64,000 nucleotides of DNA from positions 1 through 64,000 of the forward strand of contig JAUPSS010000001.1 of the NCBI GenBank assembly GCA_040285825.1. Reading direction: 5' to 3'. The DNA is from Eukaryota sp. TZLM1-RC (taxonomy: Eukaryota > Protista > Metamonada: BaSk clade). The position numbers and the translations under genes were made by a program. Position 1 is the first letter of the stretch. Every line of letters begins with the position of its first letter. Below the pieces are notes generated by a model. The model had not been told where the DNA came from and did no database searches. It saw nothing but the letters and a program-made list of their open reading frames with translations. Of this stretch, positions 3,759 through 29,500 are shown piece after piece.

Positions 3759-6700
3759 TCAATCATCACTAAGATCACAAATGGCAAGTCGGGCATACAC
3801 TTTGCTCATTTTAAAGCATGATCTTGTAAATGACAGCGATATTTTTTTCCCATAAGAGCCTATCTCCTTTTTACGCAAAAAATTTACAAAACTTCGTTCG
3901 ATGCCTCCAGAAGGAAATGCGATTAGTGGAACCAAAGGAACATGGTGAGAATATTTACCAATTTTCGACATTCTACGGCGTTCAATCAGTGTATTGAGAG
4001 GGGTAGAATATCCACCGACTAAAGTGAGGTCATAACACTCGCTGCCATCGGGACGAATAAGGTCAACTCTGCCGTTACCTACGTTCTGTTCTTTGAGTAA
4101 GCCTGTCAGTTGCGATATCAATTCAACCACATCATCATGTCTTCTAATTCGCATAGATGATAGTTGTTCGCAATTGGCTGAATGATACTGAGAATTGGAT
4201 TCATGTTTACAAAAGGGACAGTGATGTACAAATTCAGAACAGAGGAGGCGGGTTCTTAAGAAATACTTGAGCAATGAATCGTCAACAAGTTCCTCAGATG
4301 GATTGATAAATAAAAGTGATTGAGACAGTGGTTTGCAATTGATTAGAACGTCGTTTTCATATTTAATTGGGATGGGTGCTATGGCTGGGTCAGTTACCGG
4401 CGACCTAAATGAAGCGAGTACAGCAGGCTTGGATCTAAAGTCCCTAGTCAAAGAATTCAGAGTCTCCAAAAAGTGGTTTTGAGTTAAGAGAGCTTGAAGT
4501 TTTGATAAGTTGGGGGAGTTGGTAGCTGTACCAAGTTCATGAAATAATGATTCAGCGCACATAAGATCTAAATCATCAAGTGGCAATGAAGAGTGGAAGA
4601 GGTTTAAAGTCCTATTGCTGGTGATGTAGGAGGCTGCGAAGCACAAATGAGCTATTTCCCCATAATTTGTGAGACCGAGTCCTCCAAATCTGGCTGACGG
4701 GAGAGAAATCAACTGAGGAAACATAGGAACAACCCCAAGTGCCGAAGAAACAAAAGAAACTATTTGATGAAAACAACTAATGAGGGGATTCTTGCTGACT
4801 GCTGGGCGATGAACACGTGCATGAAAGGACAGTTTGGTGTTGATGCAGTGTCTCACAAGAAGCAATTGCTCTTGTAACGTCAGCGATTCGAGACATTTCA
4901 ACAGAGAACTAGTTATTGGTGGGAGTGAGCTTGAAAGATCATCTTCGGCGTTTGGGCCAAAATGTGCACCAAGCACCTCGAAATTGTCATTGCTAGAGAC
5001 AACAGCAGTTTTGTCAAGATTGACTTCAAGACCAATGTCTTGGATAAAGCTTGAAACAGTCCCAACAATAGCATCAGTTTCATGGTCGTTGCAAAGAACA
5101 AAAAGGTCATCTAAATACAAATAAAAATGACAGGATGGGTGCAGGGTACTGAGCTGTGTTGTAAACGGGACAAGGGCAGTTGAAAACAGCAAGGGACCGA
5201 GGGGATCGCCTTGTCGAACACCACGTTCTGAGAAAATAACTGAGTTTCTAAAATGTAATGTGGAAGGGCTCAGATAGCTAGCTTTAAAGAATGGGAACAG
5301 CAAAGGACAATATTCAGCAACAGCTTGGGCAAGCTGACAACGATCGACCTCATTGAATGCATTGCGCACATCAAACTTGATCAGTTTTTCGAAAGATAGG
5401 CCTAGATTACTACGAATTGAATGGACAATAGCTTCACCACCACCAGGGACTTTCACGCCATATTGATTTGAATTGATCAAATAGTCAACATTTACTTTAG
5501 ATAACGCAAGGCCGGCAGCAATGCGGTAAAATAGTTCTCCAACTGCCAAGGGTCGCACTCCATTACTTTTCTTTGGGATGGCGAGCAATCTACTGGAAGT
5601 GAGAACACGTCTGAGGGGCTCACTTATTTTGCCACTGAGCAGGCCGTTTGCTATATACTGTACACATGACACCAAGTGGTCATCAATACACTGTTTCAAA
5701 AGTTTGGCATGCCAGTGGGAGGGGCCACCTTCCGTCATAGGGGAATTAAGGATTGCGTCAGCTACGGAAGAGGAGTCGTGGTAGGAGTAGTGTTCAGTTA
5801 GCATATTGTTATATTGACAAAAGTTTGGATCAGCTGGATGGAGGTGTTGCAATTGCTCTAGCATGGAGTTATTAGTTATGTTTGCTGTTGGTGGTTCTCT
5901 TGATAGCAGATTCATAGCGCGACTCAGTTCGTTGTCGTGAATAAGTTCTTTGACTCTCTTTATATTGACTCGATTGCTAAATGTATGTGGTCTGATGGGG
6001 GTTGTGTTACAAAAAGAAGGAAGAAGTATCTTCACATTGACCAATATTAAATTTGTGAACCCTGTGTTGGAATCGGAAAAAGTTTAAAAAGTGATGAGCC
6101 TTTGTCCAGCTTTTAGGCAAACTACCGGTAGCACTAGAAGATATCTACATTTTTGTTCCATTGGCAGGGAAGAATGGGTGACCAACTTGACTGCAGAGCG
6201 GAATGAGGGACGATCACTGAGCCGCTTGTAAGTGAAGCTTGCAATTTCATTGCTCAGTTGAATAAATAGAGAATCGGAAATACATGGCATATCCAGAGTC
6301 GGTGACTCATGACGTTTGAAATGGTTGTCAAAACCAACCGATGAGAACACCTTCAGGCAAACGGGGCAGCGAACCAGATTATTAATGTGTAATGTGTCAG
6401 TGTCTATAGAAGAGTGATGCTTATCAATATGGCAGCATAAGGTTCTTGCTTTGGAGAAGAAACTGGGACAGATAGGACAATTGTGTGATTTTTCTAAATT
6501 GAACGAGTCAAGGGGAGCACTATCAGCGATGTGTTCACAGTGGTCAGGTGGTAATGAACAAAGTGGTATAGGGCCTTCAAGAACATGATAACGTGTTCTT
6601 AAATACTTCAGCAGTGAACATTCAGAGCCATTAGCGCCACGTTTTGCTAAAACATCAGCAACATTATTATTGGTATTGTCAGAATGTGCCAACACTTTTT

Positions 6701-8301
6701 TAAAGGAGAAGGAGAATAGTCTAAAACGAGAACTATTTATGAGATCCTTTATTTGGCTGCGGATTCTTTTGACAGTAGGATTCTTTAGGGATGCTTTTAG
6801 GTTAAGAGAATCAACAACAAGGCTACTGTCAGAAAAAAATGATAATGTGTTTGTGGACAGTGAGAGAGCAACACTAAGGATTTAATGGTCATCAAAACAG
6901 CTTCAAACTCAGCTGCGTTATGGGTGTTGTACCGTGATGGGCCATAAATTTCGAATCGCTTATCCTTGAAAGTATAAAAGCCACCAAAGCCAGATTTATT
7001 ACTTTTCTTGAGAAAAGATCCATCTGTGTAAATCTCCAAGGGATTCACATTAACATCCATATCAGAGGAAGCATTCGATTCAAGCATGTGGCCACTGTCA
7101 TCAGGAAGTATGATTGGATTAGATTCATCACCATCATCATTGGCATCAAAAGAGACAATAGGAGAACTATCAAGGTCAGAAGGACAAACAGGTGGATGTG
7201 AAATATCTCGAACAGGTTCAGTCACAAGAGGGCCCTGTTGATACCCAAACCCAAGACCATAACGTTGGCTTGGGTTAACCGGTTGATGGTACAATTGAAT
7301 AGGAGAGTCCTCAGAAGGAAGAAGAGGACTCTCTGAATTATTGACAGATTCACTGAGAAAAATGCACAACCTTTCTTAGTTTATATGCATCCCGATGCCT
7401 TCTACAGAAATGATGTCAGAGCAGCTACATCTTGTGTATCCATTGGCTTTTAAGACATCAAGGCTGACATCAGGATGCATTTTCATCAAATGCCTTGTCA
7501 ACCCAGACCGCTTAGAGAACGGTTCAGTTCTGGGGCAGAGCGAGACAAAAGCAGCAGAACTTTCTCTCTACGATTTTGACAAACACCTGAAATTTTGTTC
7601 TAAATTTTCGACATTAGCAGAGAGGGGATCATCACAAAGGGACACAGGGCAAAAACCCCCCTTCCCACCACAGTGGTTATTTGTAGCGAGCCGAAGCTCA
7701 CTACGAGAATCGATCACGTCATTGCTGACGTGATCGCTGGTATTAGCACCTCTCAATGGAGAGGCACTAGACAATGTGCGTGTGGGGATTCGAACTCAGG
7801 ACCGCAACCTCTGAGTCAAAGGTCTTATCCACTAGACCAGGTGAGCGCTGATACCTGTCGCTGGTAACTATCATATGGAGTTGCAAGGTGAGAACTATCT
7901 TGGTCTGAAATAATCGTTTGAGGAAAGAATTCAGAAGCGTCTAAAACAGAGATTGAGGCAAAGTATTTTTCAGTGTGTGAGGAAGCGTCAGTGGAAAGTT
8001 GACCAGAGGAAGTGGGTGGGTCATTAGAGGTAAGCTGTGAAATGGAGAAAGAGTACTTATCTTCCGCATATAAATGTGGAGTTTGGTCATAGGAAGAAGC
8101 CAACACTAGATTTCGGTCAGATTCATCAGAATCTGCCACGGACAGCTCTATAGCACTAGGGCTATTCTGCTCGATGCCGCTGACATCGGCAGTCATGTTG
8201 GACTCTTCTAGACCTTCCAAAAGAGAAGAGAATTCTGAAGGAGATAAAGAAGGTTGAGACTTTGAGGGCTTAAAAAACCCCGTAAGAGATGTCTGTCTCA
8301 T
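3759..8301 (-). CDS. Family A polyprotein (~1500 aa, several frameshifts): PIP box - Zn fingers - RNase H - Zn fingers - RT - CCHC/RLE
   Basis: ORF pieces join by homology to element C: MRQTSLTGFF; IYTDGS..AAEFEA..FSDS..NNVADVLAK; CPIC..H..H; RPLAVGELFYR, FDVRNAFN, QGDPLGP, YLDD; CPFC..H..C, RHD, RVDL, YDLT, KIGKY. Confidence 0.88.
7776..7846 (-). other. tRNA-derived cassette (A box and B box) inside the element A ORF
   Basis: Minus strand GCTCACC-TGGTCTAGTGG-ATAAGAC...GAGTTCGAATCCC; D stem GTCT/AGAC intact; anticodon loop, T stem and acceptor stem degenerate. Confidence 0.7.
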
Positions 8302-8345
8302 ACAATGGCGGTGGAACAGGAGATAGACGTGAGTTGCAGGGGAAA

Positions 8346-11300
8346 AACCATTGGTCAATATACGAAACTAGGAACTTCATATGAGCCTCAGTAAATCGTA
8401 TCAAAACGATACTCTTACACTTACAGCAATTGTTTTATTAGTTTACAACATTCAATTGTATACTTTTTGATTTTTTTACTTTTTACAATTTGAATGTTTA
8501 AAAATTAATACACTCAATTAATTCAAATATATACAAAAATCATTTGAAAAATGTAATCATGAGTTTGTACTGATCAAGTAACACATAGCCAACATTACTA
8601 ACACACAATTTCACACAAAGTTTGATCACAAGTTGATCACATCTAGTACATAAAGACTACATGCAACTCATCTAATCATACCAATGACCATTCAACCAAT
8701 CATACCAATGACTAATCAAATGACCATAGCACGGACTTTTAACACCACAATTGTTATATTAATTGTCCCAAAATGGACTTTAAAGATTTGACCAATGATT
8801 GTAATAAACAACCATTGGTCAATATACGAAACTAGGAACTTCATATGAGCCTCAGTAAATCGTATCAAAAACGATACTCTTACACTTACAGCAATTGTTT
8901 TATTAGTTTACAACATTCAATTGTATACTTTTTGATTTTTTACTTTTTTTACAATTTAATGTTTAAAAATTAATACACTCAATTAATTCAAATATATACA
9001 AAAATCATTTGAAAATGTAATCATGAGTTTGTACTGATCAAGTAACACATAGCCAACATTACTAACACACAATTTCACACAAAGTTTGATCACAAGTTGA
9101 TCACATCTAGTACATAAAGACTACATGCAACTCATCTAATCATACCAATGACCATTCAACCAATCATACCAATGACTAATCAAATGACCATAGCACGGAC
9201 TTTAACACCACAATTGTTATATTAATTGTCCCAAAATGGACTTTTAAAGATTTGACCAATGATTGTAATAAACAACCATTGGTCAATATACGAAACTAGG
9301 AACTTCATATGAGCCTCAGTAAATCGTATCAAAAACGATACTCTTACACTTACAGCAATTGTTTTATTAGTTTACAACATTCAATTGTATACTTTTTGAT
9401 TTTTTTACTTTTTTTTACAATTTGAATGTTTAAAAATTAATACACTCAATTAATTCAAATATATACAAAAATCATTTGAAAAATGTAATCATGAGTTTGT
9501 ACTGATCAAGCAACACATAGCCAACATTACTAACACACAATTTCACACAAAGTTTGATCACAAGTTGATCACATCTAGTACATAAAGACTACATGCAACT
9601 CATCTAATCATACCAATGACCATTCAACCAATCATACCAATGACTAATCAAATGACCATAGCACGGACTTTAACACCACAATTGTTATATTAATTGTCCC
9701 AAAATGGACTTTAAAGATTTGACCAATGATTGTAATAAACAACCATTGGTCAATATACGAAACTAGGAACTTCATATGAGCCTCAGTAAATCGTATCAAA
9801 AACGATACTCTTACACTTACAGCAATTGTTTTATTAGTTTACAACATTCAATTGTATACTTTTTGATTTTTTACTTTTTTTTACAATTTAATGTTTAAAA
9901 ATTAATACACTCAATTAATTCAAATATATACAAAATCAATTGAAAATGTAATCATGAGTTTGTACTGATCAAGTAACACATAGCCAACATTACTAACACA
10001 CAATTTCACACAAAGTTGATCACATCTAGTACATAAAGACTACATGCAACTCATCTAATCATACCAATGACCATTCAACCAATCATACCAATGACTAATC
10101 AAATGACCATAGCACGGACTTTAACACCACAATTGTTATATTAATTGTCCCAAAATGGACTTTAAAGATTTGACCAATGATTGTAATAAACAACCATTGG
10201 TCAATATACGAAACTAGGAACTTCATATGAGCCTCAGTAAATCGTATCAAAAACGATACTCTTACACTTACAGCAATTGTTTTATTAGTTTACAACATTC
10301 AATTGTATACTTTTTGATTTTTTACTTTTTTTACAATTTAATGTTTAAAATTAATACACTCAATTAATTCAAATATATACAAAAATCATTTGAAAAATGT
10401 AATCATGAGTTTGTACTGATCAAGTAACACATAGCCAACATTACTAACACACAATTTCACACAAAGTTTGATCACAAGTTGATCACATCTAGTACATAAA
10501 GACTACATGCAACTCATCTAATCATACCAATGACCATTCAACCAATCATACCAATGACTAATCAAATGACCATAGCACGGACTTTAACACCACAATTGTT
10601 ATATTAATTGTCCCAAAATGGACTTTTAAAGATTTGACCAATGATTGTAATAAACAACCATTGGTCAATATACGAAACTAGGAACTTCATATGAGCCTCA
10701 GTAAATCGTATCAAAAACGATACTCTTACACTTACAGCAATTGTTTTATTAGTTTACAACATTCAATTGTATACTTTTTGATTTTTTTACTTTTTTTACA
10801 ATTTAATGTTTAAAAATTAATACACTCAATTAATTCAAATATATACAAAATCATTTGAAAATGTAATCATGAGTTTGTACTGATCAAGTAACACATAGCC
10901 AACATTACTAACACACAATTTCACACAAAGTTTGATCACAAGTTGATCACATCTAGTACATAAAGACTACATGCAACTCATCTAATCATACCAATGACCA
11001 TTCAACCAATCATACCAATGACTAATCAAATGACCATAGCAACTTTAACACCACAATTGTTATATTAATTGTCCCAAAATGGACTTTAAAGATTTGACCA
11101 ATGATTGTAATAAACAACCATTGGTCAATATACGAAACTAGGAACTTCATATGAGCCTCAGTAAATCGTATCAAAACGATACTCTTACACTTACAGCAAT
11201 GGTTTTTATTAGTTTGCAACATTCAATTGTATACTTTTTGATTTTTACTATTTTTTACAATTTAATGTTTAAAAATTAATAAACTCAATTAATTCAAATA

Positions 11301-11594: not shown

Positions 11595-11995
11595 ACGAAA
11601 CTAGGAACTTCATATGAGCCTCAGTAAATCGTATCAAAAACGATACTCTTACACTTACAGCAATGAGTTCCGTATCTTGGTCGTCTACCAAGGTTTCATG
11701 ATCCTGCGAATCTTCATAGTTTCAATGATCAATGAATAGTACTTAGACTAAACATCAATCCCACTGATGAGATATTGGGACTGTGTAAACACAATCCTAA
11801 TCTTTATCGATTAAATTTGTAGGTCAATATATCATCCTTTCTAGGTTGGATACTAGCTTAGAGGCGTTCAGCTATAATCCAACACATGTTAGCTTCACAC
11901 CAATATCTTTTCAGATAAGCGTAAATACCAATTATGCGAAACAACGGTTCCTCTCGTACTGGGTTGCTTTACTATTAGGATGACAATTATTCAGT
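11595..11995 (-). rRNA. 28S rRNA 3'-terminal fragment
   Basis: As 3306-3706 with three transitions (~11687, 11820, 11884). Confidence 0.95.
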
Positions 11996-14900
11996 TTATT
12001 AAAGAAAGAAATGTTCAATCACAATGAAGAAACTATAACTAAAGCGATCAATCATCACTAAGATCACGAATGGCAAGTCGGGCATACACTTTGCTCATTT
12101 TAAAGCATGATCTTATAAATGACAGCGATATTTTTTTCCCATAAGAGCCTATCTCTTTTTTACGCAAAAAATTTACAAAACTTCGTTCGATGCCTCCAGA
12201 AGGAAATGCGATTAGTGGAACCAAAGGAACATGGTGAGAATATTTACCAATTTTCGACATTCTACGGCGTTCAATCAGTGTATTGAGAGGGGTAGAATAA
12301 CCACCGACCAAAGTGAGGTCATAACACTCGCTGCCATCGGGACGAATAAGGTCAACTCTGCCGTTACCTACGTTCTGTTCTTTGAGTAAGCCTGTCAGTT
12401 GCGATATCAATTCAACCACATCATCATGTCTTCTAATTCGCATAGATGATAGTTGTTCGCAATTGGCTGAATGATACTGAGAATTGGATTCATGTTTACA
12501 AAAGGGACAGTGATTTACAAATTCAGAACAGAGGAGGCGGGTTCTTAAGAAATACTTGAGCAATGAATCGTCAACAAGTTCCTCAGATGGATTGATAAAT
12601 AAAAGTGATTGAGACAGTGGTTTGCAATTGATTAGAACGTCGTTTTCATATTTGATTGGGATGGGTGCTATGGCTGGGTCAGTTACCGGCGACCTAAATG
12701 AAGCGAGTACAGCAGGCTTGGATCTAAAGTCCCTAGTCAAAGAATTCAGAGTCTCCAAAAAGTGGTTTTGAGTTAAGAGAGCTTGAAGTTTTGATAAGTT
12801 GGGGGAGTTGGTAGCTGTACCAAGTTCATGAAATAATGATTCAGCGCACATGAGATCTAAATCATCAAGTGGCAATGAAGAGTGGAAGAGGTTTAAAGTC
12901 CTATTGCTGGTGATGTAGGAGGCTGCGAAGCACAAATGAGCTATTTCCCCATAATTTGTGAGACCGAGTCCTCCAAATCTGGCTGACGGGAGAGAAATCA
13001 ACTGAGGAAACATAGGAACAACCCCAAGTGCCGAAGAAACAAAAAGAAACTATTTGATGAAACAACTAATGAGGGATTCTTGCTGACTGCTGGGCGATGA
13101 ACACGTGCATGAAAGGACAGTTTGGTGTTGATGCAGTGTCTCACAAGAAGCAATTGCTCTTGTAACGTCAGCGATTCGAGACATTTCAACAGAGAACTAG
13201 TTATTGGTGGGAGTGAGCTTGAAAGATCATCTTCGGCGTTTGGGCCAAAATGTGCACCAAGCACCTCGAAATTGTCATTGCTAGAGACAACAGCAGTTTT
13301 GTCAAGATTGACTTCAAGACCAATGTCTTGGATAAAGCTTGAAACAGTCCCAACAATAGCATCAGTTTCATGGTCGTTGCAAAGAACAAAAAGGTCATCT
13401 AAATACAAATAAAAATGACAGGATGGGTGCAGGGTACTGAGCTGTGTTGCAAACGGGACAAGGGCAGTTGAAAACAGCAAGGGACCGAGGGGATCGCCTT
13501 GTCGAACACCACGTTCTGAGAAAATAACTGAGTTTCTAAAATGTAATGTGGAAGGGCTCAGATAGCTAGCTTTAAAGAATGGGAACAGCAAAGGACAATA
13601 TTCAGCAACAGCTTGGGCAAGCTGACAACGGTCGACCTCATTGAATGCATTGCGCACATCAAACTTGATCAGTTTTTCGAAAGATAGGCCTAGATTACTA
13701 CGAATTGAATGGACAATAGCTTCACCACCACCAGGGACTTTCACGCCATATTGATTTGAATTGATCAAATAGTCAACATTTACTTTAGATAGCGCAAGGC
13801 CGGCAGCAATGCGGTAAAATAGTTCTCCAACTGCCAAAGGCCGCACTCCATTACTTTTCTTTGGGATGGCGAGCAATCTACTGGAAGTGAGAACACGTCT
13901 GAGGGGCTCACTTATTTTGCCACTGAGCAGGCCGTTTGCTATATACTGTACACATGACACCAAGTGGTCATCAATACACTGTTTCAAAAGTTTGGCATGC
14001 CAGTGGGAGGGGCCACCTTCCGTCATAGGGGAATTAAGGATTGCGTCAGCTACGGAAGAGGAGTCGTGGTAGGAGTAGTGTTCAGTTAGCATATTGTTAT
14101 ATTGACAAAAGTTTGGATCAGCTGGATGGAGGTGTTGCAATTGCTCTAGCATGGAGTTATTAGTTATGTTTGCTGTTGGTGGTTCTCTTGATAGCAGATT
14201 CATAGCGCGACTCAGTTCGTTGTCGTGAATAAGTTCTTTGACTCTCTTTATATTGACTCGATTGCTAAATGTATGTGGTCTGATGGGGGTTGTGTTACAA
14301 AAGAAGGAAGAAGTATCTTCACATTGACCAATATTAAATTTGTGAACCCTGTGTTGGAATCGGAAAAGTTTAAAAAGTGATGAGCCTTTGTCCAGCTTTA
14401 GGCAAACTACCGGTAGCACTAGAAGATATCTACATTTTTGTTCCATTGGCAGGGAAGAATGGGTGACCAACTTGACTGCAGAGCGGAATGAGGGACGATC
14501 ACTGAGCCGTTTGTAAGTGAAGCTTGCAATTTCATTGCTCAGCTGAATAAATAAAGAATCAGAAATACAGGGCATATCTAGAGTCGGTGACTCATGACGT
14601 TTGAAATGGTTGTCAAAACCAACCGATGAGAATACCTTCAAGCAAACTGGGCAGCGAACCAGATTATTAATGTGTAATGTGTCAGTGTCTATAGAGGAGT
14701 GGTGCATATCAATATGGCAGCATAAGGATCTTGCTTTGGAAAAGAAACTGGGACAGATAGGACAATTGTGTGATTTTTCTAAAATGGACGAGTCAAGGGG
14801 AGCACTATCAGCAATCTGTTCACAGTGGTCAGGTGGTAATGAACAAAGTGGTATAGGGCCTTCAAGAACATGATAACGTGTTCTTAAATACTTCAGCAGT

Positions 14901-15039
14901 GAACATTCAGAGCCATTAGCGCCACGTTTTGCTAAAACATCAGCAACATTATTATTAGTGTTGTCAGAATGTGCCAACACTTTTTTAAAGGAGAAGGAGA
15001 ATAGTCTAAAACGAGAACTATTTATGAGATCCTTTATTT
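11996..15039 (-). mobile_element. Family A copy A2, 5'-truncated within the RNase H domain
   Basis: Same 3' junction as A1 and near-identical to 3707-6754; homology ends at cctttattt and joins repeat A; ORFs 12998-15049 and 12048-13013 are split by homopolymer frameshifts. Confidence 0.93.
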
Positions 15040-15042
15040 CCT

Positions 15043-17345
15043 TCAACATTCAATTGTATACTTTTTGATTTTTTACTATTTTTACAATTTAATGTTTAAA
15101 AATTAATAAACTCAATTAATTCAAATATATACAATTCAATTGTATACTTTTTGATTTTTACTTTTTTACATTTAATGACATTAATAACTCCAATTAATTC
15201 AAATATATACAAAATCAATTGAAAATGTAATCATGAGTTTGTACTGATCAAGTAACACATAGCCAACATTACTCACACACAATTTCACACAAAGTTTGAT
15301 CACAAGTTGATCACATCTAGTACATAAGGACTACATGCAACTCATCTAATCATACCAATGACCATTCAACCAATCATACCAATGACTACTCAAATGACCA
15401 TAGCACGGACTTTAACACCACAATTGTTATATTAATTGTCCCAAAATGGACTTTAAAGATTTGACCAATGATTGTAATAAACAACCATTGGTCAATATAC
15501 GAAACTAGGAACTTCATATGAGCCTCAGTAAATCGTATCAAAAACAATACTCTTACACTTACAGCAATTGTTTTATTAGTTTACAACATTCAATTGTATA
15601 CTTTTTGATTTTTTACTATTTTTACAATTTAATGTTTAAAAATTAATAAACTCAATTAATTCAAATATATACAAAATCAATTGAAAATGTAATCATGAGT
15701 TTGTACTGATCAAGTAACACATAGCCAACATTACTCACACACAATTTCACACAAAGTTTGATCACAAGTTGATCACATCTAGTACATAAAGACTACATGC
15801 AACTCATCTAATCATACCAATGACCATTCAACCAATCATACCAATGACTACTCAAATGACCATAGCAAGGACTTTAACACCACAATTGTTATATTAATTG
15901 TCCCAAAATGGACTTTAAAGATTTGACCAATGATTGTAATAAACAACCATTGGTCAATATACGAAACTAGGAACTTCATATGAGCCTCAGTAAATCGTAT
16001 CAAAACGATACTCTTACACTTACAGCAATTGTTTTATTAGTTTACAACATTCAATTGTATACTTTTTGATTTTTTACTTTTTTACAATTTAATGTTTAAA
16101 AATTAATACACTCAATTAATTCAAATATATACAAAAATCATTTGAAAATGTAATCATGAGTTTGTACTGATCAAGTAACACATAGCCAACATTACTAACA
16201 CACAATTTCACACAAAGTTTGATCACAAGTTGATCACATCTAGTACATAAAGACTACATGCAACTCATCTAATCATACCAATGACCATTCAACCAATCAT
16301 ACCAATGACTAATCAAATGACCATAGCACGGACTTTAACACCACAATTGTTATATTAATTGTCCCAAAATGGACTTTAAAGATTTGACCAATGATTGTAA
16401 TAAACAACCATTGGTCAATATACGAAACTAGGAACTTCATATGAGCCTCAGTAAATCGTATCAAAAACGATACTCTTACACTTACAGCAATTGTTTTATT
16501 AGTTTACAACATTCAATTGTATACTTTTTGATTTTTTACTGTTTTTACAATTTAATGTTTAAAAATTAATACACTCAATTAATTCAAATATATACAAAAT
16601 CATTTGAAAATGTAATCATGAGTTTGTACTGATCAAGTAACACATAGCCAACATTACTCACACACAATTTCACACAAAGTTTGATCACAAGTTGATCACA
16701 TCTAGTACATAAAGACTACATGCAACTCATCTAATCATACCAATGACCATTCAACCAATCATACCAATGACTACTCAAATGACCATAGCACGGACTTTAA
16801 CACCACAATTGTTATATTAATTGTCCCAAAATGGACTTTAAAGATTTGACCAATGATTGTAATAAACAACCATTGGTCAATATACGAAACTAGGAACTTC
16901 ATATGAGCCTCAGTAAATCGTATCAAAAACGATACTCTTACACTTACAGCAATTGTTTTATTAGTTTACAACATTCAATTGTATACTTTTTGATTTTTTA
17001 CTGTTTTTACAATTTAATGTTTAAAAATTAATACACTCAATTAATTCAAATATATACAAAATCATTTGAAAATGTAATCATGAGTTTGTACTGATCAAGT
17101 AACACATAGCCAACATTACTAACACACAATTTCACACAAAGTTTGATCACAAGTTGATCACATCTAGTACATAAAGACTACATGCAACTCATCTAATCAT
17201 ACCAATGACCATTCAACCAATCATACCAATGACTAATCAAATGACCATAGCACGGACTTTAACACCACAATTGTTATATTAATTGTCCCAAAATGGACTT
17301 TAAAGATTTGACCAATGATTGTAATAAACAACCATTGGTCAATAT
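15043..17345 (-). repeat. Tandem repeat A, ~5 copies
   Basis: Same unit, with a short internal duplication near 15130-15200. Confidence 0.96.
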
Positions 17346-17742
17346 ACGAAACTAGGAACTTCATATGAGCCTCAGTAAATCGTATCAAAAACGATACTCT
17401 TACACTTACAGCAATGAGTTCCGTATCTTGGTCGTCTGCCAAGGTTTCATGATCCTGCGAATCTTCATAGTTTCAATGATCAATGAATAGTACTTAGACT
17501 AAACATCAATCCCACTGATGAGATATTGGGACTGTGTAAACACAATCCTAATCTTTATCGATTAAATTTGCAGGTCAATATATCATCCTTTCTAGGTTGG
17601 ATACTAGCTTAGAGGCGTTCAGCTATAATCCAACGCATGTTAGCTTCACACCAATATCTTTTCAGATAAGCGTAAATACCAATTATGCGAAACAACGGTT
17701 CCTCTCGTACTGGGTTGCTTTACTATTAGGATGACAATTATT

Positions 17743-17798
<56 letters not shown>

Positions 17799-17900
17799 TT
17801 AATGGGTGAACAATCCAACGCTTTGAGAATTCTGCTTCTCAATGATAGGAAGAGCCGACATCGAAGAATCAAAAAGCAACGTCGCTATGAACGCTTGGCT

Positions 17901-17943
<43 letters not shown>

Positions 17944-18303
17944 AGCTAAAAGTTTCTTATAGTTAAAGGATCGTTAGGCCACAATTTCTTGGTTTGTATT
18001 CATACTGAAAATCAAAAATCAAGTGAGCTTTTACCCTTATGTTCTACATGAGATTTCTGTTCTCATTGAGCTCACCTTAGGACACCTCCGTTATTATTTT
18101 GGAGATGTGCCGCCCCAGCCAAACTCCCCATCTGACAATGTCCTTAAATCCGATCGTATCCGAAGACACTTAAATCTTGAAACAGGAAACCTGTTTCGGA
18201 TTAATTAAGTTAGCAAACCAATGTCAAGAGTCAGGGTGTTTCATTGGCGTAGATAAATCTACTCCCCTGTACGCTACACCTCCTGAATCGGTTCACAATA
18301 TCA

Positions 18304-18341
<38 letters not shown>

Positions 18342-18347
18342 GAATTA

Positions 18348-18383
<36 letters not shown>

Positions 18384-18405
18384 GGTAGGTAGGGACAGTG
18401 GGAAC

Positions 18406-18438
<33 letters not shown>

Positions 18439-18439
18439 G

Positions 18440-18484
<45 letters not shown>

Positions 18485-19394
18485 TGTTTACCCGTGCTTG
18501 ATTGAATCTCTTCACAATGACATTCAGAGCACTGAGCAGAAATCACTTTCTGTCAACACCGTTTCCGGCCATCAGAAAGCTTTGTTTCGATTAAACAGTC
18601 GGGTTCCCTTTGTCCGTTACAGTTCTAGGTTGACCTTTAATTGCATAAAAGTAATCCCAATGGATCAACACCTCGCATCAACGCAATTGTTGCCAATCAC
18701 ATCAACGCTCAGTGCGTCACCACTAGGGCTCTTACACAAGGCCCCTAGAGCCAATCCTTATCCCGAAGTTACGGATCTATTTTGCCGACTTCCCTTACCT
18801 ACGTTCTTCTATAGACCAGAGGCTACACACCTTGGAGACCTGATGCGGTTATCGGTACGGACAACAATGAAGTGATTACTCCTCTAGATTTTCAAGGGCC
18901 GTTGAGAATACACCGGACATTACAAAAACGTAATGCTCTTCCTATCTTATATCCACTTCTCCTGTTAAACAGATTCCATGGACAATAGACAGTTAATAAG
19001 AAAAGATAACTCTTCCCAGGATCCTCCCCGACATCTCTAGATTCGATTGTGTTACCACGAACACCCACTGTTGGTGCAGGAATATTAACCTGCTTCCCTT
19101 TCGACAGGACGGAGCTATAAAAGCCCCCTCTCAAAGAGTTAACCTGTGCCTTAGGACCGACTAACCCATGGCAGAATACCTTTACCATGGAACCCTACTC
19201 CACTTCGGTCAACAAGATTCCAACTTGTTTATTTGCTACTACCACCAAGATCTGCACTAGAGGCTGCTCCAGTCCATTTCACAATGAACCTTCTACGCAA
19301 CCCCCACGACGTTCTACACATTAACTCATAAAATGAATTAATGGACATGTATAGGTGGCACACTTTAGCGCCATCAATTTTCAGGGCTAGTTGA

Positions 19395-19428
<34 letters not shown>

Positions 19429-20269
19429 ATTCCGACTTCCATGGCCACCGTCCTGCTGTCAATATCAACCAACACCTTTTCTGGGGTCTAAATGAGTGCA
19501 CACTTAGGCACCTTAACATGTCTTTTGGAGCATCCCACATCGCCAGTTCTGCTTACCAAAAATGGCCCACTTAGAGCTATTATTCAATTGCAACGATCAC
19601 TTAAGTATCATCACAAATCTTGCCCATTTAAAGTTTGAGAATAGGCTAAGGACATTGCGTCCCTAGTACCTCTAATCATTAGCTTTACCGGACAAAACTA
19701 AAACAAGCTCCAGCTATCCTGGGGGAAACTTCGAACGTAACCAGCTACTAGCCGCTTCGATGAGTCTTTCGCCCCTATACCCAAATTTGACGAGTGATTT
19801 GCACGTCAACATCGCTACGGACTTCCACCAGAGTTTCCCCTGGCTTCATCCTATTCAGGCATAGTTCAGCGGCTTTCGGGTCGTATCCATTCTGCTCATA
19901 CTCAGATCCCTTTGCAAGGACTGGTTGAGGGTGCAGTCGAAACTTCCCCTCATAAAATTACTTTCATTTCGCCTTCAGGTTTTTACACCCTACGACTTGC
20001 AGAAGAGATACACTCCTTGGTCCGTGTTTCAAGACGGGACAATTGAACCTTTTATGTTGGAGTCTCGGTAAAACCGTATTCCTGATTCTTAAAAAGAACA
20101 ATTTATGAGGCTATAACACTACAATAAACCGAAGTTCATTATAGCTACCTTCCCCACAATCACTCAATTTTCAAAATCACTCCAACGCAAGACAGCCGAA
20201 GCTATCAATATCAAGTTCCAATCGCTTATCCTTTCAGTGATTTCAGGTACTTTTAACTCTCTCTTCAGA

Positions 20270-20300
<31 letters not shown>

Positions 20301-20652
20301 GAACTATCGGTCTCCTTTTTATATTTAGCTTTATGGGAAACTTACCCCACATTTAACGCTGCATTCCCAAACAGCGCGACTCTCGGAAAATCAGTAGTGA
20401 ATCAATTACTTCGATGTCATTTACAGGATTTTCACCTTCCATGATACCCTTTTCCAAAGGACTTATACATCGAGAACCGAATACTGGTTTCCATAGACTA
20501 CAACTCTTCACAATCTAAAGATCATAAAGATTCAGTCTTGAGCTTTTTCCTGTTCGCTCGCCGCTACTAAGGAAATCATAGTTATTTTCTTTTCCTCCCC
20601 TTATTGATATGCTTAAGTCCAGGGGGTGATCTTACTTGAAATCAGGTCGAAA
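17346..20652 (-). rRNA. 28S (LSU) rRNA, complete and uninserted
   Basis: Reverse complement starts GACCTGATTTCAAGTAAGATCACCCCCTGGACTTAAGCATATCAATAAG; contains CCCGTCTTGAAACACGGACCAAGGAG, TCTCTTAAGGTAGCCAAATGCC, GGTTTAGACCGTCGTGAGACAGGTTAG; ends approximate. Confidence 0.97.
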
Positions 20653-21207: not shown

Positions 21208-21253
<46 letters not shown>

Positions 21254-21648: not shown

Positions 21649-24600
21649 TAATTTATTTCACTACAAAAGTACAAAAGCTATGAGCTACAAAACTATAATT
21701 TATCTCTACTTACTACTTAGACGAAAATTGAGCAGTTATCAACATAAGGTGAATGGACTATAAATGGCAATTTCTACCCTCAATCTTGCACCCCTGGTGG
21801 AGGCACAACCTGAGACAGGACGTCGACATTGTTTTCTGCCGATCCTTTGAAATTGGAGAGTTTGCTAAGTTCAGAAAAATAACGTTTTTCCGCCCTTGCA
21901 GAACCTCTGATAATGGCCACCGATAATTTGGGAACAATATGAGATATCTCTAAAGTTCTCAGTCTATCGAGGTATTTCCCATGGATCCCACCAGAAACAT
22001 AGGATATCAGGATCTCCATTAAATCCACTTCACCCTCTTCAATGAGTTTTTTATGTTGAAACTTCTTACGCTTCACTGTCGATGCGACATGAGACGCAAG
22101 GGTTCCTTCACCACCACCAACGACTGTAAGGTCGTAGGCAGTTCTAGATGATTCATCAATTAAGTCAGGCCTACTGGCTTGAGACCATCTATTGAACTCA
22201 CTCTTTGGCTCGATCCTAAATCCACTTGCCCTCCCAGTTATTTGTACAAGTGAATCGTGGCGCGCTATTACTTCTCTAGAAGTTTTGCAATTGACAAAAT
22301 GGCTAGCCGTTATGTCTTTCGCTCCACAGCTAGGGTAACCACACTTGGATCGAGGCTTGCTATGCATGAGTCTTCTTCTTACTCCGCTCATCATAGCATG
22401 ATCGTCTAGTGTCAAATCTCTTTCAGTTGGAACAACTGTTAACCACCTGTGACACTCAGGCGTTAATTGCAGCTCAACCTCATGTCTGAGAGTTCTAGGT
22501 ATCGCTGAAACATTGCTGGCTTTGCACTCTTCTGGAAAAAGAACCATTTCTGAAGACATTGCTGGCTTTTTGAAATAGTCCGTACATTCTTCGAAGAGTT
22601 GCTTCGCGAAATCTAAGTGGTAGAGACGTGTCTCTAGTTTTTGCATTCCTCTTAGATCAGCAATGCTAAGTTCTAGGAATGAACTCACATGTTTGGGGTC
22701 AACGAAACTACCTAACAAATAATCTAAACGAGATATTGTTGATTCTGTATACAGGTCCATAATTTTATTTTTATACCTATTTACCACAACAATACTACTT
22801 GCTAGACTACTTGCATTGGCAAGAACGCTAACCTTACTCCAATCGGTCATTCCGAGGCCGCCCCAGTTCATTGGCAAGGAGACCAACCCATCAAAGAGAA
22901 CTTCCGTCTTGAACCAATTTCTTATGCAATTACAGACCAATTCATGAAACTTTTCCAAAAGTGAATTCGCCAGGTCAGGGGTCCAAGCGCGAGCAAGGAA
23001 TCCTAGTTTGGGTTGAATACACATTCTTAAAAGTAACAAGCGATATTGCAAAGGAAGTATCTCTAAGCTTACTAGACTCTTTTCTAGCTCTTTGACTTTT
23101 AAGTCACTTTGTTTTGGGGATAGGGAACCGATAGGACATCCTAAGACGTCAAAGGTTGGGTTGTTCGATAGTTGAACTATCTCGCATTTTTCGCGGTTGA
23201 CTTTGCATCCAACAGGGGCACTTAGTTCCGAGAACAAGTCAAGGAACATATTACATTGTTCTTCGCTAGTGCAGAGAACTGCAATATCATCCAGATAACC
23301 TAGAGACACGGCATCTGGGAATTCAGAACCCATTTTGGACATGATATCATCTATGCCTACGGCAAAGAGATACGGACCTAGTGGGTCTCCCTGTTTCACA
23401 CCACACGTTGATTCAATGCTTCCTTCCGAATGGAAAAGCTTAGAGCTTCTTCCGTAAATTCTTAAGAACGAAGGTACCATTTCTGGTGCTAAGTTCTTCA
23501 AATTTTTCAGAATTTCACATCGATGAATACTATTGAAAGCATTCGCTATATCAATTTTCAACAAATGAGAAAATCGATCTGTGGTGGTAGATTGTCTTAC
23601 AGAATGAATAATGGCTTCAGCTCCACAAGGGATCTTAACACCAAATTGTCCATTCATCGCCAATCTTTCCGGGTCAACCTTACGGAGTATAGCCTTGGCG
23701 TATATCCGGTAGAACAGTTCTCCGACGGCAATTGGTCTTACACTATGACCGTCGTTTTTGGGGATGGGTACTAGACGAGAATTTAAAAGGACTTCAACAA
23801 GAACCTCTTGACTTTCGTCTTGAGGACCATTATGAAGCACCTTCGAGATATACCAAAGCATATCATCGAAGTAGGCTCCCGAAGGAACCAACTTCTTCGT
23901 CCACATTGTGGGACCACCGGAAGAAGAAGTGCACATTGTTCTAAGAACGCCGGTTACATCTTCAATAGATAAATCGATCTTAGGCGAACCTGGATCGATA
24001 TCAGCAACTTCTCCAGATGGATGCAATTTTTGAAGTTGCGCGGTGATCTGCTCTTTGGTTAATTGAAATGGCGTAACATCGCGTTCGAGTAAAGCCATCG
24101 CCTTACTACATGAACCATCTCTAACCAACTCCATCGCCCTCCTTGACTGCTCTTTCGCGATTCCCTCTTCAGTTCTATTTTTTCTTTTAAGATTATCAGG
24201 CCTTAAAAGATTAACCACCTCGTTGCATGTTATTTCGTCCTGATTATTACGATTGATAAGATCAATAAGACGATTAAGCTGGGTGAAACAATTTCCCTTT
24301 CTACCATATAGAAAAACATAAGGGGAAATCAATAAATACATCCATTTTTGAGTCATCGTGGCATCACTATTAGCAATGCTTCCAATAACTCCTCTCCAAG
24401 TACCCTTGGACCGAAGTCTAGCGTACCTGGTGGATGCAATTTCATGGTAGAGTACTCTAAACAATTCCGCACTAAGTACAGGCAGTTCTTTGTACTCTAG
24501 ACCAGCTTCAGGCATGCATACCTTCTTATGATTTGTTAGCCCAGTCGAAGTGAAAACACCTCTACAGGAAGGGCACACACCGTATCCCTTTGCTGCTAAC

Positions 24601-26544
24601 TCATCATCCGTGACCCCCGGATGAAACCTCGCCAAATGCTCTAAGAGCTTATTGTTATTAGGAAAAGTCCAGTCACAACTGGTAACTGGACAAACTTTTT
24701 TAACTTTTCCCTTACAATACTTTTTATGGATGTTAATTGATTTGGGTTGATCTTTCACCACTGTTCTGCATTTACCGCAGCGGTGGAATCCATTCGCTTT
24801 ATATTGAGAATCAGGGATGTCCCCGTGCTCTACACTCAGGTGATTGTGTAGGCTTTTAATTGTATTGAATGTGAACTCACATTCTTCGACGAAACACGTG
24901 GTCAGCTTAATAGTTCCTTGTGATCGTCTTCCTATTGGTTTCTCTAGGCTTGGACTTGGAGAGTGATCTCTAGTTTCGGCCGCCAATAGGTCCCTGATAT
25001 CTCGCGGGGGTCTTGAGGGGTTAGAACTGGTTTGACTGGTTTGTTTTTCTTTGCCTGGAAGGACAAACTCTAAACCTTCTTTTAATTTTGATTGTGGTTG
25101 TTGAGTGCAATCCTCGACACTCATTGCTCTAATTGGAACATATGTAAAATTAGGTGACTTATCACCTACAATGCTGTTTTTTGCAAAACGCAGAGCCATT
25201 TTCATTCGTTCCTTTGTTAATTTATTCGCAGCACTGGAGACACCTTTTACTTTCTCCAATGTTAATACATAGGGTAACCCTTCCCTTTTAGAGCATATTT
25301 TATTAATAACAGGTCTCAGCTGTGTTACATTCACTGTTGACCTACCCATAATTCTCTCGAAGGCCCAGTCGCAATCGGTGATAATCACTGCAGATTGCAT
25401 ATCCCGAGGACGTACCTCAGGTTTTTCAATTAGGAGCATTGCTGCCAGCAAAGCATGGCTTTCTGCACCTAGACCGGTTGTAACGCCTTCACAAGGTCCG
25501 TAGTAATCTAAATAATGGTCCCCGTTATAATACATAACGATTCCCATTCCCGTCCTTGTATTTGACTTGGGTATGCTTCTAAATGCACCACTTGCGTAGA
25601 TCATTAGAGCATTTTGAGGATTGGGGATTCTATGTTTAGGCCCTGTACTCTCCGAATCCTTAAAAGAGACAGTGCCACTGTGTGCTGGTTTTAAACCTGA
25701 TTTTAGGTGTTTCTTTGCTGTTGATACACCTCGCTGATGAGTGTTTCTTGCTGTTGATACAGCTAGCTGGTGGGTGTTTTTTGCTGTTGATACACCTAAC
25801 TTAGGTGTTTTACTCGTTGATGTGACACCTTGTCTAGGTTTTCCCGCTGTTGAATGTCTTTTTGACCTTTTCTTAATGCAATCAATTTCAATGTGAGAGC
25901 CAGAGTTTAAATTTTCGTTACCAATAAAGGTAGGCTTGTGCCCCTCCCTATCCTCCGAAGAGGAATCGGGAGAGCGAGAACGTAAACTGCTAGAAGGACC
26001 TGACATATCATGAATTTTTGAAAGAAGAAAAAGAAAAATATATTTATAACCACTCGGTATTCAGTGATTGTTGTATTTTTTTTTTGTTTGTATTTATTTC
26101 TCACCTAAGGTTAGTTTTTTTGTTCGGTCCCCTTCCCAATTAGCTTACGAAGGTTTCCTCATGAGAAGTCGACAGTGTCATACTCATAATACCTGCTCTA
26201 AGTAAAACACTGTTGATCCTAGTTTGCCTTATATGAATATAAGTCATTCTTGAATCACTTACCCTCCTCGAAGACTAAATAAAGGAATTCTTTGTCCCAG
26301 GAAAATTTTCAAAGAAAAAACCCCCAACAATGGAATCCATTGATGAGGGTTGTGACAAATCTAATGTTGAAAAATGTTTGTTAAGTCCTATGTCCCAAAT
26401 GCTACACGGGAATACCCTACGCCCACTAATAGTATATGAACCCCCTCCGACAAGGTAATATACTAAAGTGTTGAAATGGAATAGGTAAACAAGACTATGT
26501 CTGAACACCGAATTTGTAAATCTTCCCCGGAAACGGAGGGGTTT
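21649..26544 (-). mobile_element. 18S-inserted CRE-clade non-LTR retrotransposon, family B, full-length (~4.9 kb)
   Basis: 18S homology stops at tatcacgt|taatttatt; ~130-nt 3' UTR, intact ORF, ~540-nt 5' UTR joined to repeat B. Confidence 0.92.
21780..26006 (-). CDS. Family B polyprotein, 1408 aa, intact: degenerate RNase H - four Zn fingers - RT - CCHC/RLE
   Basis: IYASGA..AESHA..ITDCD; two (C2H2+C2HC) pairs; RPIAVGELFYR, IDIANAFN, QGDPLGP, YLDD; CGYPSC..HFVNC, RHD, RPDL, YDLT. Confidence 0.95.
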   Translation of the reverse strand: MSGPSSSLRSRSPDSSSEDREGHKPTFIGNENLNSGSHIEIDCIKKRSKRHSTAGKPRQGVTSTSKTPKLGVSTAKNTHQLAVSTARNTHQRGVSTAKKHLKSGLKPAHSGTVSFKDSESTGPKHRIPNPQNALMIYASGAFRSIPKSNTRTGMGIVMYYNGDHYLDYYGPCEGVTTGLGAESHALLAAMLLIEKPEVRPRDMQSAVIITDCDWAFERIMGRSTVNVTQLRPVINKICSKREGLPYVLTLEKVKGVSSAANKLTKERMKMALRFAKNSIVGDKSPNFTYVPIRAMSVEDCTQQPQSKLKEGLEFVLPGKEKQTSQTSSNPSRPPRDIRDLLAAETRDHSPSPSLEKPIGRRSQGTIKLTTCFVEECEFTFNTIKSLHNHLSVEHGDIPDSQYKANGFHRCGKCRTVVKDQPKSINIHKKYCKGKVKKVCPVTSCDWTFPNNNKLLEHLARFHPGVTDDELAAKGYGVCPSCRGVFTSTGLTNHKKVCMPEAGLEYKELPVLSAELFRVLYHEIASTRYARLRSKGTWRGVIGSIANSDATMTQKWMYLLISPYVFLYGRKGNCFTQLNRLIDLINRNNQDEITCNEVVNLLRPDNLKRKNRTEEGIAKEQSRRAMELVRDGSCSKAMALLERDVTPFQLTKEQITAQLQKLHPSGEVADIDPGSPKIDLSIEDVTGVLRTMCTSSSGGPTMWTKKLVPSGAYFDDMLWYISKVLHNGPQDESQEVLVEVLLNSRLVPIPKNDGHSVRPIAVGELFYRIYAKAILRKVDPERLAMNGQFGVKIPCGAEAIIHSVRQSTTTDRFSHLLKIDIANAFNSIHRCEILKNLKNLAPEMVPSFLRIYGRSSKLFHSEGSIESTCGVKQGDPLGPYLFAVGIDDIMSKMGSEFPDAVSLGYLDDIAVLCTSEEQCNMFLDLFSELSAPVGCKVNREKCEIVQLSNNPTFDVLGCPIGSLSPKQSDLKVKELEKSLVSLEILPLQYRLLLLRMCIQPKLGFLARAWTPDLANSLLEKFHELVCNCIRNWFKTEVLFDGLVSLPMNWGGLGMTDWSKVSVLANASSLASSIVVVNRYKNKIMDLYTESTISRLDYLLGSFVDPKHVSSFLELSIADLRGMQKLETRLYHLDFAKQLFEECTDYFKKPAMSSEMVLFPEECKASNVSAIPRTLRHEVELQLTPECHRWLTVVPTERDLTLDDHAMMSGVRRRLMHSKPRSKCGYPSCGAKDITASHFVNCKTSREVIARHDSLVQITGRASGFRIEPKSEFNRWSQASRPDLIDESSRTAYDLTVVGGGEGTLASHVASTVKRKKFQHKKLIEEGEVDLMEILISYVSGGIHGKYLDRLRTLEISHIVPKLSVAIIRGSARAEKRYFSELSKLSNFKGSAENNVDVLSQVVPPPGVQD

Positions 26545-29500
26545 ACACCAAAAATGTGATCAAGAACACATGTTGTATTTATAAACTTGAAAACTTCTCT
26601 TGTAAAATGCGCCATTCGTTTCCATTTTTTCAAAGGCAAGATAACCATGTATAAATTGTTGCAAATGTTGTAAAAAGATTATCAACAAAGGAATTCAAAT
26701 CAAATGAATGACATGAACATTGGTTTTTAATGATGTATAAAGCTTTTAAATTTTGAAAAGATACTGACCTAATCAAAAGAATGATAATCGTGCAGAAAAT
26801 AGCGTTACCGTTGCCATATACAAACGATCACCTTTTGATTCAAATCAAACAAACGATATCTGTTTCTAGAATACATTCAAAATGAAAGTGAAATTGTAAA
26901 TTTTTTTGGAATTTATTTTTTTGTTTCTGTGAAATAACAAAAAGTAAAATAATTTTCTTTATCAATGTAAAAAGTTCATGCAACAATGTTTTTCTACACC
27001 AAAAATGTGATCAAGAACACATGCTGTATTTATAAACTTGAAAACTTCTCTTGTAAAATGCGCCATTCGTTTCCCATTTTTTTCAAAGGCAAGATAACCA
27101 TGTATAAATTGTCGCAAATGTTGTAAAAAGATTATCAACAAAGGAATTCAAATCAAATGAATGACATGAACATTGGTTTTAATGATGTATAAAGCTCATA
27201 AATTTTGAAAAGATACTGACCTAATCAAAAGAATGATAATCGTGCAGAAAATAGCGTTACCGTTGCCTTTTACAAACGATCACCTTTTGATTCAAGTCAA
27301 AAAAATGATATCTGTTTTTAGAATACATTCAAAATGAAAGTGAAACTGTAAATTTTTTAAAAATTTATTTTTTTGTTTCTGTCAAATAACAAAAGTAAAA
27401 TAATTTTCTTTATATAAAATATTTATTTTTATTCCACAACAAATATGAAATACACAATTAAAACTCCACATCCTCAAAACCTGCCTCCCCTACATCAAAA
27501 CAATTAATCGCTAAAGATTCAGAAAATTTCCCAAAAGAAGATAGTGAATCAGAAATTAGTGTTACCATTCCCTTAAAAATAGAAAATACAATCCTGTTTT
27601 TCCAGTAAACACGATTGAAAATTCTTCCAGTTCTTTCCTTTACAACTACAACAAAATCCTCAAGGAAAGCCATAGCAGCCTTACCTAGAGATCCAAGCAA
27701 AGAAAAAAACAAATGGACATAAATTATATTGGGCATGAGAATTTTCATTAACCGAGGAAATGGGTTTCGCATATTTAGCAATTTTATATTTTTCGCCTGC
27801 AAGAAGAGGATTATTTACATCCGAGTTAATGAAATGTTCGTTAGAGGAATTACAAGGGTCAATAGACATGGCGTCCAAAATAGTAAAACTACCATTTAAA
27901 CCAGGAACAACTAGATCACCTCTAGTCAGACCCATAGAAGCTCTGTTGTAACGCGTACTATCAATATTGGGATCATCAAGAATTAATTTTGATAACAGCG
28001 GTTCTAAAAAGGAATCTACACGATATGATTTGCACATTACATAAATTTGGTCCCTGACGTTATTATGCACTTTGCTTCTAAACGTAATGAAATGTTTACA
28101 GTTCAAAAAGATGAGTAAACAAAAGAGGTTTACCACATTTACAAGTTAAATGATTGGGCAAATTGTTTGACACAAAAACAACGAAAACGCAAGTTTAGAA
28201 GCCATTCATTGTCTTTTAACAAAAGTCCATAAACAGAGGGAACTTGAGTTACTAAAAGCAGCAGCAGAACTATCACGAATATCCTTTAAAAAATTACCTT
28301 TAATTTAATTTTTCTTTATCAATGTAAAAGTTCACGCAACAATGTTTTTTTACACCAAAAATGTGATCAAAAACCAGTGGTGCTATTCATAAATTGAAAA
28401 CTTCTCCTGTAAATTGCGCCATTCGTTTCGATTTTTTCAAAGGCAAGATAACCATGTATAAATTGTCGCAAATGTTGTAAAAAGATTATCAACAAAGGAA
28501 TTCAAATCAAATGAATGACATGAACATTGGTTTTAATGATGTATAAAGCTCTTAAATTTTGAAAAGATACTGACCTAATCAAAAGAATGATAATCGTGCA
28601 GAAAATAGCGTTACCGTTGCCATATACAAACGATCACCTTTTGATTCAAATCAAACAAACGATATCTGTTTCTAGAATACATTCAAAATGAAAGTGAAAT
28701 TGTAAATTTTTTTGGAATTTATTTTTTTGTTTCTGTGAAATAACAAAAGTAAAATAATTTTCTTTATCAATGTAAAAGTTCATGCAACAATGTTTTTCTA
28801 CACCAAAAATGTGATCAAGAACACATGCTGTATCTATAAACTTGAAAACTTCTCTTGTAAAATGCGCCATTCGTTTCCATTTTTTCAAAGGCAAGATAAC
28901 CATGTATAAATTGTCGCAAATGTTGTAAAAAGATTATCAACAAAGGAATTCAAATCAAATGAATGACATGAACATTGGTTTTAATGATGTATAAAGCTCT
29001 TAAATTTTGAAAAAGATACTGACCTAATCAAAAGAATGATAATCGTGCAGAAAATAGCGTTACCGTTGCCATATACAAACGATCACCTTTTGATTCAAAT
29101 CAAACAAACGATATCTGTTTCTAGAATACATTCAAAATGAAAGTGAAATTGTAAATTTTTTGGAATTTATTTTTTTGTTTCTGTGAAATAACAAAAGTAA
29201 AATAATTTTCTTTATCAATGTAAAAGTTCATGCAACAATGTTTTCTACACCAAAATGTGATCAAGAACACATGCTGTATCTATAAACTTGAAAACTTCTC
29301 TTGTAAAATGCGCCATTCGTTTCCATTTTTTCAAAGGCAAGATAACCATGTATAAATTGTCGCAAATGTTGTAAAAAGATTATCAACAAAGGAATTCAAA
29401 TCAAATGAATGACATGAACATTGGTTTTAATGATGTATAAAGCTCAAAATTTTGAAAGAAATACTAATCTAATCAAAAAAATGATAATCGTACAGAAGTT

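Follow-up and report, generated by a model that had tools for sequence, protein, structure and literature searches.

Site-specific retrotransposon junctions at one nucleotide of the 28S rRNA gene in the metamonad Skoliomonas litria

The window, meaning the whole stretch of 64,000 nt that was analysed, covered an edge of an rDNA array whose rRNA genes read along the minus strand. Skoliomonas litria is a free-living protist belonging to the metamonads. Isolate TZLM1-RC, from which the sequence derives, is its type isolate (PMC11603281). The published genome consists of 16 contigs with 35.8% GC and 55% repeats, was assembled from 41x Nanopore reads and polished afterwards, and was described without mention of retrotransposons or rDNA (PMC11316075). 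Rfam matches in the window comprised one complete 28S gene, one 5.8S gene, and 18S as a 3' part only, the first ~1170 nt of 18S being absent across the whole 64 kb. Self-comparison showed the last 401 nt of 28S (17346-17746) to be repeated three more times. The 28S features were as follows (elements A1, A2 and C are listed further below):

17346..20649, minus strand: complete 28S rRNA gene, 3304 nt (Rfam LSU_rRNA_eukarya 1-3401, 3038 bits), with the R2 site at 18454/18453 unoccupied
17735..17760, minus strand: unoccupied target site of the one intact 28S gene, with the junction at 17747/17746, after 28S nt 2903
3306..3706, minus strand: the 3'-terminal 401 nt of 28S, on the downstream side of A1 and without differences from the intact gene
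11595..11995, minus strand: 28S 3' tail downstream of A2, with three transitions relative to the other copies
32455..32855, minus strand: 28S 3' tail on the downstream side of C, without differences from the intact gene

Each extra tail was preceded by spacer repeats of ~462 bp and followed by non-rDNA sequence. The only differences of the A2-flanking tail (11595-11995) from the other three copies were C>T, G>A and C>T. A segmental duplication of 6.8 kb at 99% identity (37533-44334 = 24035-30834) contained the 5' part of element B and a second kind of spacer repeat of ~450 bp. Beyond the last spacer repeats (48600-64000) the window carried single-copy genes, among them a GT8-like glycosyltransferase (51254-52309) and a ribose-phosphate pyrophosphokinase (56117-57175), so that the window covers a boundary of the rDNA array.

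Read in rRNA sense, the intact gene ran ...TTTTACCCT^ACTGAATAATTG at 17747/17746 (^ marks the junction), or, with a longer upstream context, ...GTTAGTTTTACCCT^ACTGAATAATTG. The 3' junctions of A1 and A2 both read ...CTTTAATAA^ACTGAATAATTG, and that of C ...GATTTAATAA^ACTGAATAATTG. On the plus strand, the antisense of the rRNA, ...gacaattattcagt was followed by agggtaaaac in the intact gene (17746/17747) and by ttattaaa at the three occupied sites (3706/3707 in A1, 11995/11996 in A2, 32855/32856 in C). In a four-way alignment with the empty site, A1, A2 and C shared the junction nucleotide and the element end TTTAATAA; the exact common junction and common end given in a preliminary description of this DNA were thus confirmed to the same base in all copies. 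The junction followed nt 2903 of the 3304-nt 28S, 707 nt 3' of the R2 cut (AAGGTAGC^CAAATGCC; site empty in the window) and 36 nt 5' of the sarcin-ricin motif AGTACGAGAGGAAC, in agreement with the earlier estimates of ~710 and ~40 nt. Three junctions would fall by chance on one of ~3300 positions with odds of roughly 1e-7. The downstream half-site occurred four times in the 64-kb window (three of the four occupied) and the upstream half-site once. The site is a genuine, precise, site-specific retrotransposon target in a protist 28S gene.

The elements in the window, all on the minus strand, were:

3707..8347, minus strand: A1, family A at full length (4641 nt), frameshifted; 3' end ...TTTAATAA at 3706/3707; 5' end TTTTTCCCCTGCAAC joined to a spacer repeat, not to 28S
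11996..15044, minus strand: A2, 5'-truncated copy of family A, 3049 nt, 98.7% identical to A1; 3' junction at 11995/11996; 5' end at a spacer repeat in another phase
21695..26545, minus strand: B, related family with an intact ORF of 1408 aa (21780-26006); 3' end abutting 18S rDNA
32856..37515, minus strand: C, family C at full length (4660 nt), its RT interrupted by one frameshift; 3' junction at 32855/32856; 5' end joined to the interior of a B element via a T run
36372..37515, minus strand: 5' module of C (5' UTR and N-terminal ORF with one zinc-finger pair), 92.6% identical to A1 7196-8347

The ends of the elements were not repeated (no LTRs), and each family had a single long ORF. A1 and C started with TTTTT(C/T)CCCTGCAACTCACG, and their 5' UTR was about 46-49 nt long. 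Within window 21076-26545, the 3' end of B joined 18S at about position 1172 of the Rfam model. The frameshifts in the A and C copies of the window may reflect decay or Nanopore assembly error. No Rfam ribozyme family reached its gathering score in the window, a search that diverged ribozymes can escape.

The order of domains in A and C was RNase H, zinc fingers, RT, CCHC and RLE. Pfam matches in the element ORFs included RVT_1 (E 1e-21 to 3e-24), RNase_H and C2H2, and no ORF of A, B or C matched the APE endonuclease family Exo_endo_phos. The RNase H domain of C occupied aa 445-579, N-terminal to the RT (from aa 934), scored higher with PF00075 (67.8 bits) than with PF13456 (30.5 bits), and kept the H of H..N..AD; in the ORFs of A and B, remnants of RNase H preceded the zinc fingers. 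In an alignment of 10 sequences, the C-terminal 190 residues contained invariant C-C-H-C, H/D, D, D and K columns. An AlphaFold model of the C-terminal region (pLDDT 79.6) matched the C-terminal zinc-knuckle and endonuclease domains of R2Tg (TM 0.74, E 2e-6) and R2Bm (TM 0.61; E of both matches within 2e-6 to 1e-4). Solved R2 proteins were also the best sequence matches in the PDB, weakly and in the RT domain only (E 2e-16). By these domains and the modelled fold, A and C are RLE-type non-LTR retrotransposons with a predicted PD-(D/E)XK endonuclease.

Families A and C were 40-48% identical in the RT-RLE region (A and the 18S-associated B, 32%). Their 3' UTRs (52 nt in A, 34 nt in C) were unrelated and had only the last 8 nt (TTTAATAA) in common. 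Both the claim that more than one family uses this precise target and the claim of at least two insertion events were upheld by this divergence. The notion of two different families needed qualification: it holds for RT-RLE and the 3' UTRs, whereas the first 1150 nt (5' UTR and N-terminal region) of A and C were 92.6% identical, the remainder being highly diverged, and both belong to one clade. Such a pattern of identity suggests that the two lineages recently exchanged the 5' module, by recombination or template switching. In these two copies the shared module had a pN/pS of 1.02 and many indels, and therefore gives no evidence of function.

Four public runs were compared with 3307-8400; they are stored as contigs, so their depths are not copy counts. 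An Illumina-derived contig (X1) spanned 28S into A (3685-6224). Another X1 contig, of depth 127 and covering window 3357-3714, connected the tail across the junction with the shared TTATTAAA, showed no branch towards the empty form, and stopped at the point of divergence between A and C; in X2, a contig with a loose end at 3714 continued into C-specific sequence. The equivalent tail contig of X2 stopped at 3706, and the 5' junction of A2 was present in X2 as a loose end. Inserted tails may outnumber intact genes, a ratio that contigs cannot show. Repetitive rDNA arrays are hard to assemble and the S. litria genome comes from 41x Nanopore reads with subsequent polishing (PMC11316075), which would leave room for the junctions being artefacts of long-read assembly. 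However, the 28S-A, 28S-C and A2 5' junctions recurred in these independent contigs and are therefore not assembly artefacts, and junctions recurred as well on other contigs and in another assembly, which makes this explanation hardly credible.

The further loci were a second S. litria contig (L001), S. litria JAUPSS010000004.1 (L002), and a contig of a second Skoliomonas assembly, GCA_040285855.1 (L003). L001 carried a 5'-truncated copy of C with an ORF of 1155 aa and the junction TAATAA^ACTGAAT as in the window. The second assembly carried family E, ~50% identical to A, which ended ...CTATAAAA^ACTGATTGTTAG; Rfam LSU positions 3005-3399 followed directly, the junction being at the same ^ACTGA nucleotide. 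In a tree with 36 metagenomic relatives (proteins) as the outgroup, A, C and E formed one clade (SH-aLRT 99), to which B was sister; a Skoliomonas-specific clade (SH-aLRT 97) comprised all of these and family D, a partial one. Because A, C and E form one clade, site specificity was inherited and did not converge among the families. Searched with a profile, 1.8 billion proteins yielded 21,904 matches, of which four were close, all from two NCBI assemblies (S. litria and GCA_040285855.1), followed by a large cloud of metagenomic RTs; the cluster members of the relatives were only unnamed or 'hypothetical' proteins. There was no rRNA on three metagenomic contigs of relatives (L005-L007), and a metagenome scan returned one distant locus (L008), without rDNA. 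Families A, C and E constitute a small clade of undescribed RLE elements. The reading preferred here, and held with good confidence, is that of a Skoliomonas-specific RLE-type (R2-like) lineage, with A and C in S. litria and E in the second species, that has a fixed 28S target.

Two side observations concern other members of this wider group. On L005 (4868-14248), distant relatives with an ORF of 1410 aa were arranged head to tail with a period of 5148 bp and no rRNA, and may represent another target-specific or tandem-inserting lineage. On L002 (14150-14904), a 28S copy broke at ...GAGACAGGTT^, 11 nt 5' of the A/C site, into antisense family D, a fourth RLE family whose endonuclease region shared 23-28% identity with those of A, B and C. 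At this locus the upstream 28S was kept, and again only the rDNA beside the 3' end of the element survived.

Upstream 28S was absent from the 5' end of every copy (A1, A2, C, the L001 copy of C, and E on L003). A1 and A2 met spacer repeats in different phases, the L001 copy of C abutted spacer repeats, and on L003 there was no LSU upstream of E. The 5' end of C was linked by GA and a run of ~20 T (37516-37535) to the interior of a B element (equivalent to 24035); the GA and the T run may be untemplated or variable 5' nucleotides. Since no copy retained upstream 28S, the copies show no target duplication or deletion that would mark second-strand cleavage. No complete insertion in an intact 28S gene was seen among the copies examined.

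On L003, the unit with E lay within a 10.9-kb tandem repeat. Two 5S rRNA genes (2306-2425 and 13250-13369) were 10.9 kb apart with 99% identical flanks, so that E and its 28S tail sit in a tandem unit that also carries 5S. Block amplification of this kind, together with the 6.8-kb duplication in the window, means that a count of junctions overstates the number of insertion events. The three hits at one nucleotide claimed in the preliminary description therefore stand as three junctions and, as events, as an upper bound: A1 and A2 were 98.7% alike, and array duplication plus deletion could account for one of them. Their different 5' ends favour two events, and one event followed by a deletion may also be the case.

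Both the amplification of units as blocks (10.9 kb on L003; 37533-44334 = 24035-30834 in the window) and the lack of any copy with an independent 5' target junction are compatible with one ancient insertion that was copied by unequal crossing-over and diverged in place to A, C and E, the tails staying identical to the functional gene through concerted evolution. This history is improbable. The RT-RLE regions have diverged by 50-60%, yet the catalytic motifs are invariant and the ORFs long, and three coding-competent families would not be expected to survive divergence in place. Moreover, near-identical copies of one family occurred at different loci with different 5' truncations. The different 5' ends of near-identical copies (A1 and A2; C of the window and of L001) and the survival of long ORFs (1155 aa in the L001 copy of C, 1408 aa in B) point to recent activity.

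The main rival to a fixed target in the 28S gene is recognition of the downstream half alone, whereby elements would re-insert beside tails already occupied, stacking upon or replacing the residents, and intact 28S would be targeted rarely or never. Re-entry of this kind would account for the absence of upstream 28S. It would also fit the half-site counts of the window (three of four downstream halves occupied, one upstream half), the 5' end of C inside another element, and the X1 contig of depth 127 that ran from the tail into TTATTAAA and had no branch leading to the empty form, a depth that is nevertheless no count. On the other hand, the sequence downstream of the junction differs between the two species beyond ACTGA (ACTGAATAATTG vs ACTGATTGTTAG) and the upstream half is invariant, and the window contains no head-to-tail stacks of A or C. 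Re-entry at tails only is accordingly considered unlikely, at a level that still places it first among the alternatives.

A fragile point of the rDNA that captures various retroelements without a sequence-specific endonuclease would be in keeping with this 28S stretch being a known niche of mobile elements, and with the antisense D that joins 11 nt upstream on L002. Capture at breaks yields scattered junctions, however, and the junctions of three families in two species had single-nucleotide precision and constant orientation, with an apparently intact RLE encoded by all three families; a fragile point is thus very improbable.

For the preferred Skoliomonas-specific lineage with a fixed 28S target, nick position and target-primed reverse transcription are proposed by analogy with R2, and the 5' resolution is a proposal as well. 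The element protein, with its RNase H, C2H2 zinc fingers, RT, CCHC knuckle and PD-(D/E)XK endonuclease, would nick the antisense strand opposite T2903/A2904. The freed 3'-OH (...ATTCAGT-3' on the plus strand of the window) would prime reverse transcription at the extreme end of the RNA (...UUUAAUAA, no poly(A)), and the nucleotide-exact 3' junction in every copy would be the product of this nick and end priming. Priming by microhomology through AATAA, present in the element end and in the downstream target, was considered and rejected, the motif lying 4 nt inside the primer end and being absent in the second species. At the 5' end, the cDNA may be joined to a distant break with deletion of the upstream unit, or later recombination in the array may remove the upstream part. 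What is left would be dead units of element, 28S tail and spacer, accumulating at this edge of the rDNA array.

The Skoliomonas elements resembled R2 in having a single ORF with N-terminal zinc fingers, RT, CCHC knuckle and C-terminal RLE, a nucleotide-exact 3' rDNA junction without poly(A), and several diverged lineages at a single site within a genome. They differed from R2 in a site 707 nt further downstream, an RNase H N-terminal to the RT, a distantly similar RT, a metamonad protist as host, and an upstream target retained in no copy. R8 (18S) and R9 (28S) are retargeted R2 relatives of animals, and to our knowledge rDNA-specific RLE retrotransposons have almost only animals as hosts. As of 2016, R2 had not been found outside animals (PMC5035012).

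The conserved 28S core houses further site-specific elements, namely R4 (nematodes), R1 (arthropods), Pokey (Daphnia) and planarian LIN9/24/26. The R1 site lies 74 nt 3' of the R2 site (PMC2048585), and the Pokey site, which adjoins the R2 site, is separated from the R4 and R1 sites by about 28 and 75 bp, respectively (PMC3849761). Identity of the Skoliomonas site with the R1, R4 or Pokey sites was rejected (roughly 630-680 nt away), as was identity with the R2 site (707 nt away, and empty) and with the LIN9/24/26 site (about window 17927, ~180 nt upstream, antisense). The Skoliomonas site lay 633 nt 3' of the R1-equivalent position (R2 + 74). Mosquito RT1/RT2 sit some 630 bp 3' of R1 and duplicate 17 bp of their target. 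The title of Besansky et al. from 1992 reportedly places two Anopheles gambiae families (RT1/RT2) at 'identical positions'. The 28S of A. gambiae has the same upstream half, ...GTTAGTTTTACCCTACTGGTG (primer, PMC2034484). By this distance, the Skoliomonas site likely coincides with theirs within a few to about 20 nt, and is probably not new as a position. Like A and C, RT1/RT2 are two distinct families at one identical 28S position. Unlike the Skoliomonas elements, which are of RLE type with a single ORF, end in TTTAATAA without an A tail and have no 5' target junction, RT1/RT2 (R1 clade) are of APE type with two ORFs, polyadenylated, and flanked by clean 17-bp duplications.

Utopia, an oomycete element of the NeSL clade, has an RNase H upstream of RT, a feature described as unique among RLE elements; its RNase H is of archaeal type (R for the conserved H) and its target is the U2 snRNA gene (PMC4640811). 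The Skoliomonas elements share the placement of RNase H upstream of RT, and differ in a PF00075 type with the H kept and in a 28S target, so that the domain was probably acquired independently, in parallel. In Giardia, which belongs to a sister lineage (Fornicata) of Skoliomonas, the RLE-type elements Genie, GilM and GilT are in some cases site-specific or lie beside truncated rDNA at chromosome ends.

The preliminary description had also proposed the conserved site as a safe harbour. Conservation holds for the upstream half (...GGTTAGTTTTACCCT), which is universal, and not for the downstream half, which varies beyond ACTG(A/G) even within the genus and differs between the two Skoliomonas species; in addition, upstream rDNA was lost in all copies. 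The variable downstream half and the consistent loss of upstream rDNA make the site weak for clean transgene insertion. For gene-insertion use the message is one of caution and not of promise: the 3' junction is precise, and clean full integration was not seen in the copies examined.

If the site is that of mosquito RT, two types of endonuclease would have converged on one position of the rRNA gene. Tentatively, and with less than even confidence, RLE elements of a metamonad and the APE elements RT1/RT2 of mosquitoes may have come by convergence to target the same few nucleotides, which lie between the peptidyl-transferase centre and the sarcin-ricin loop. The protist lineage would be one-sided in that it combines a precise 3' junction with a constant loss of kilobases of upstream rDNA, yielding arrays of element plus 28S tail and not interrupted genes. 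The coexistence of A, C and E at an inherited site resembles that of coexisting R2 lineages in animals. This protist radiation within the rDNA, in which A, C and E occupy a single 28S nucleotide, B lies in 18S and D sits 11 nt off in antisense orientation, is a natural series for how RLE elements change target.
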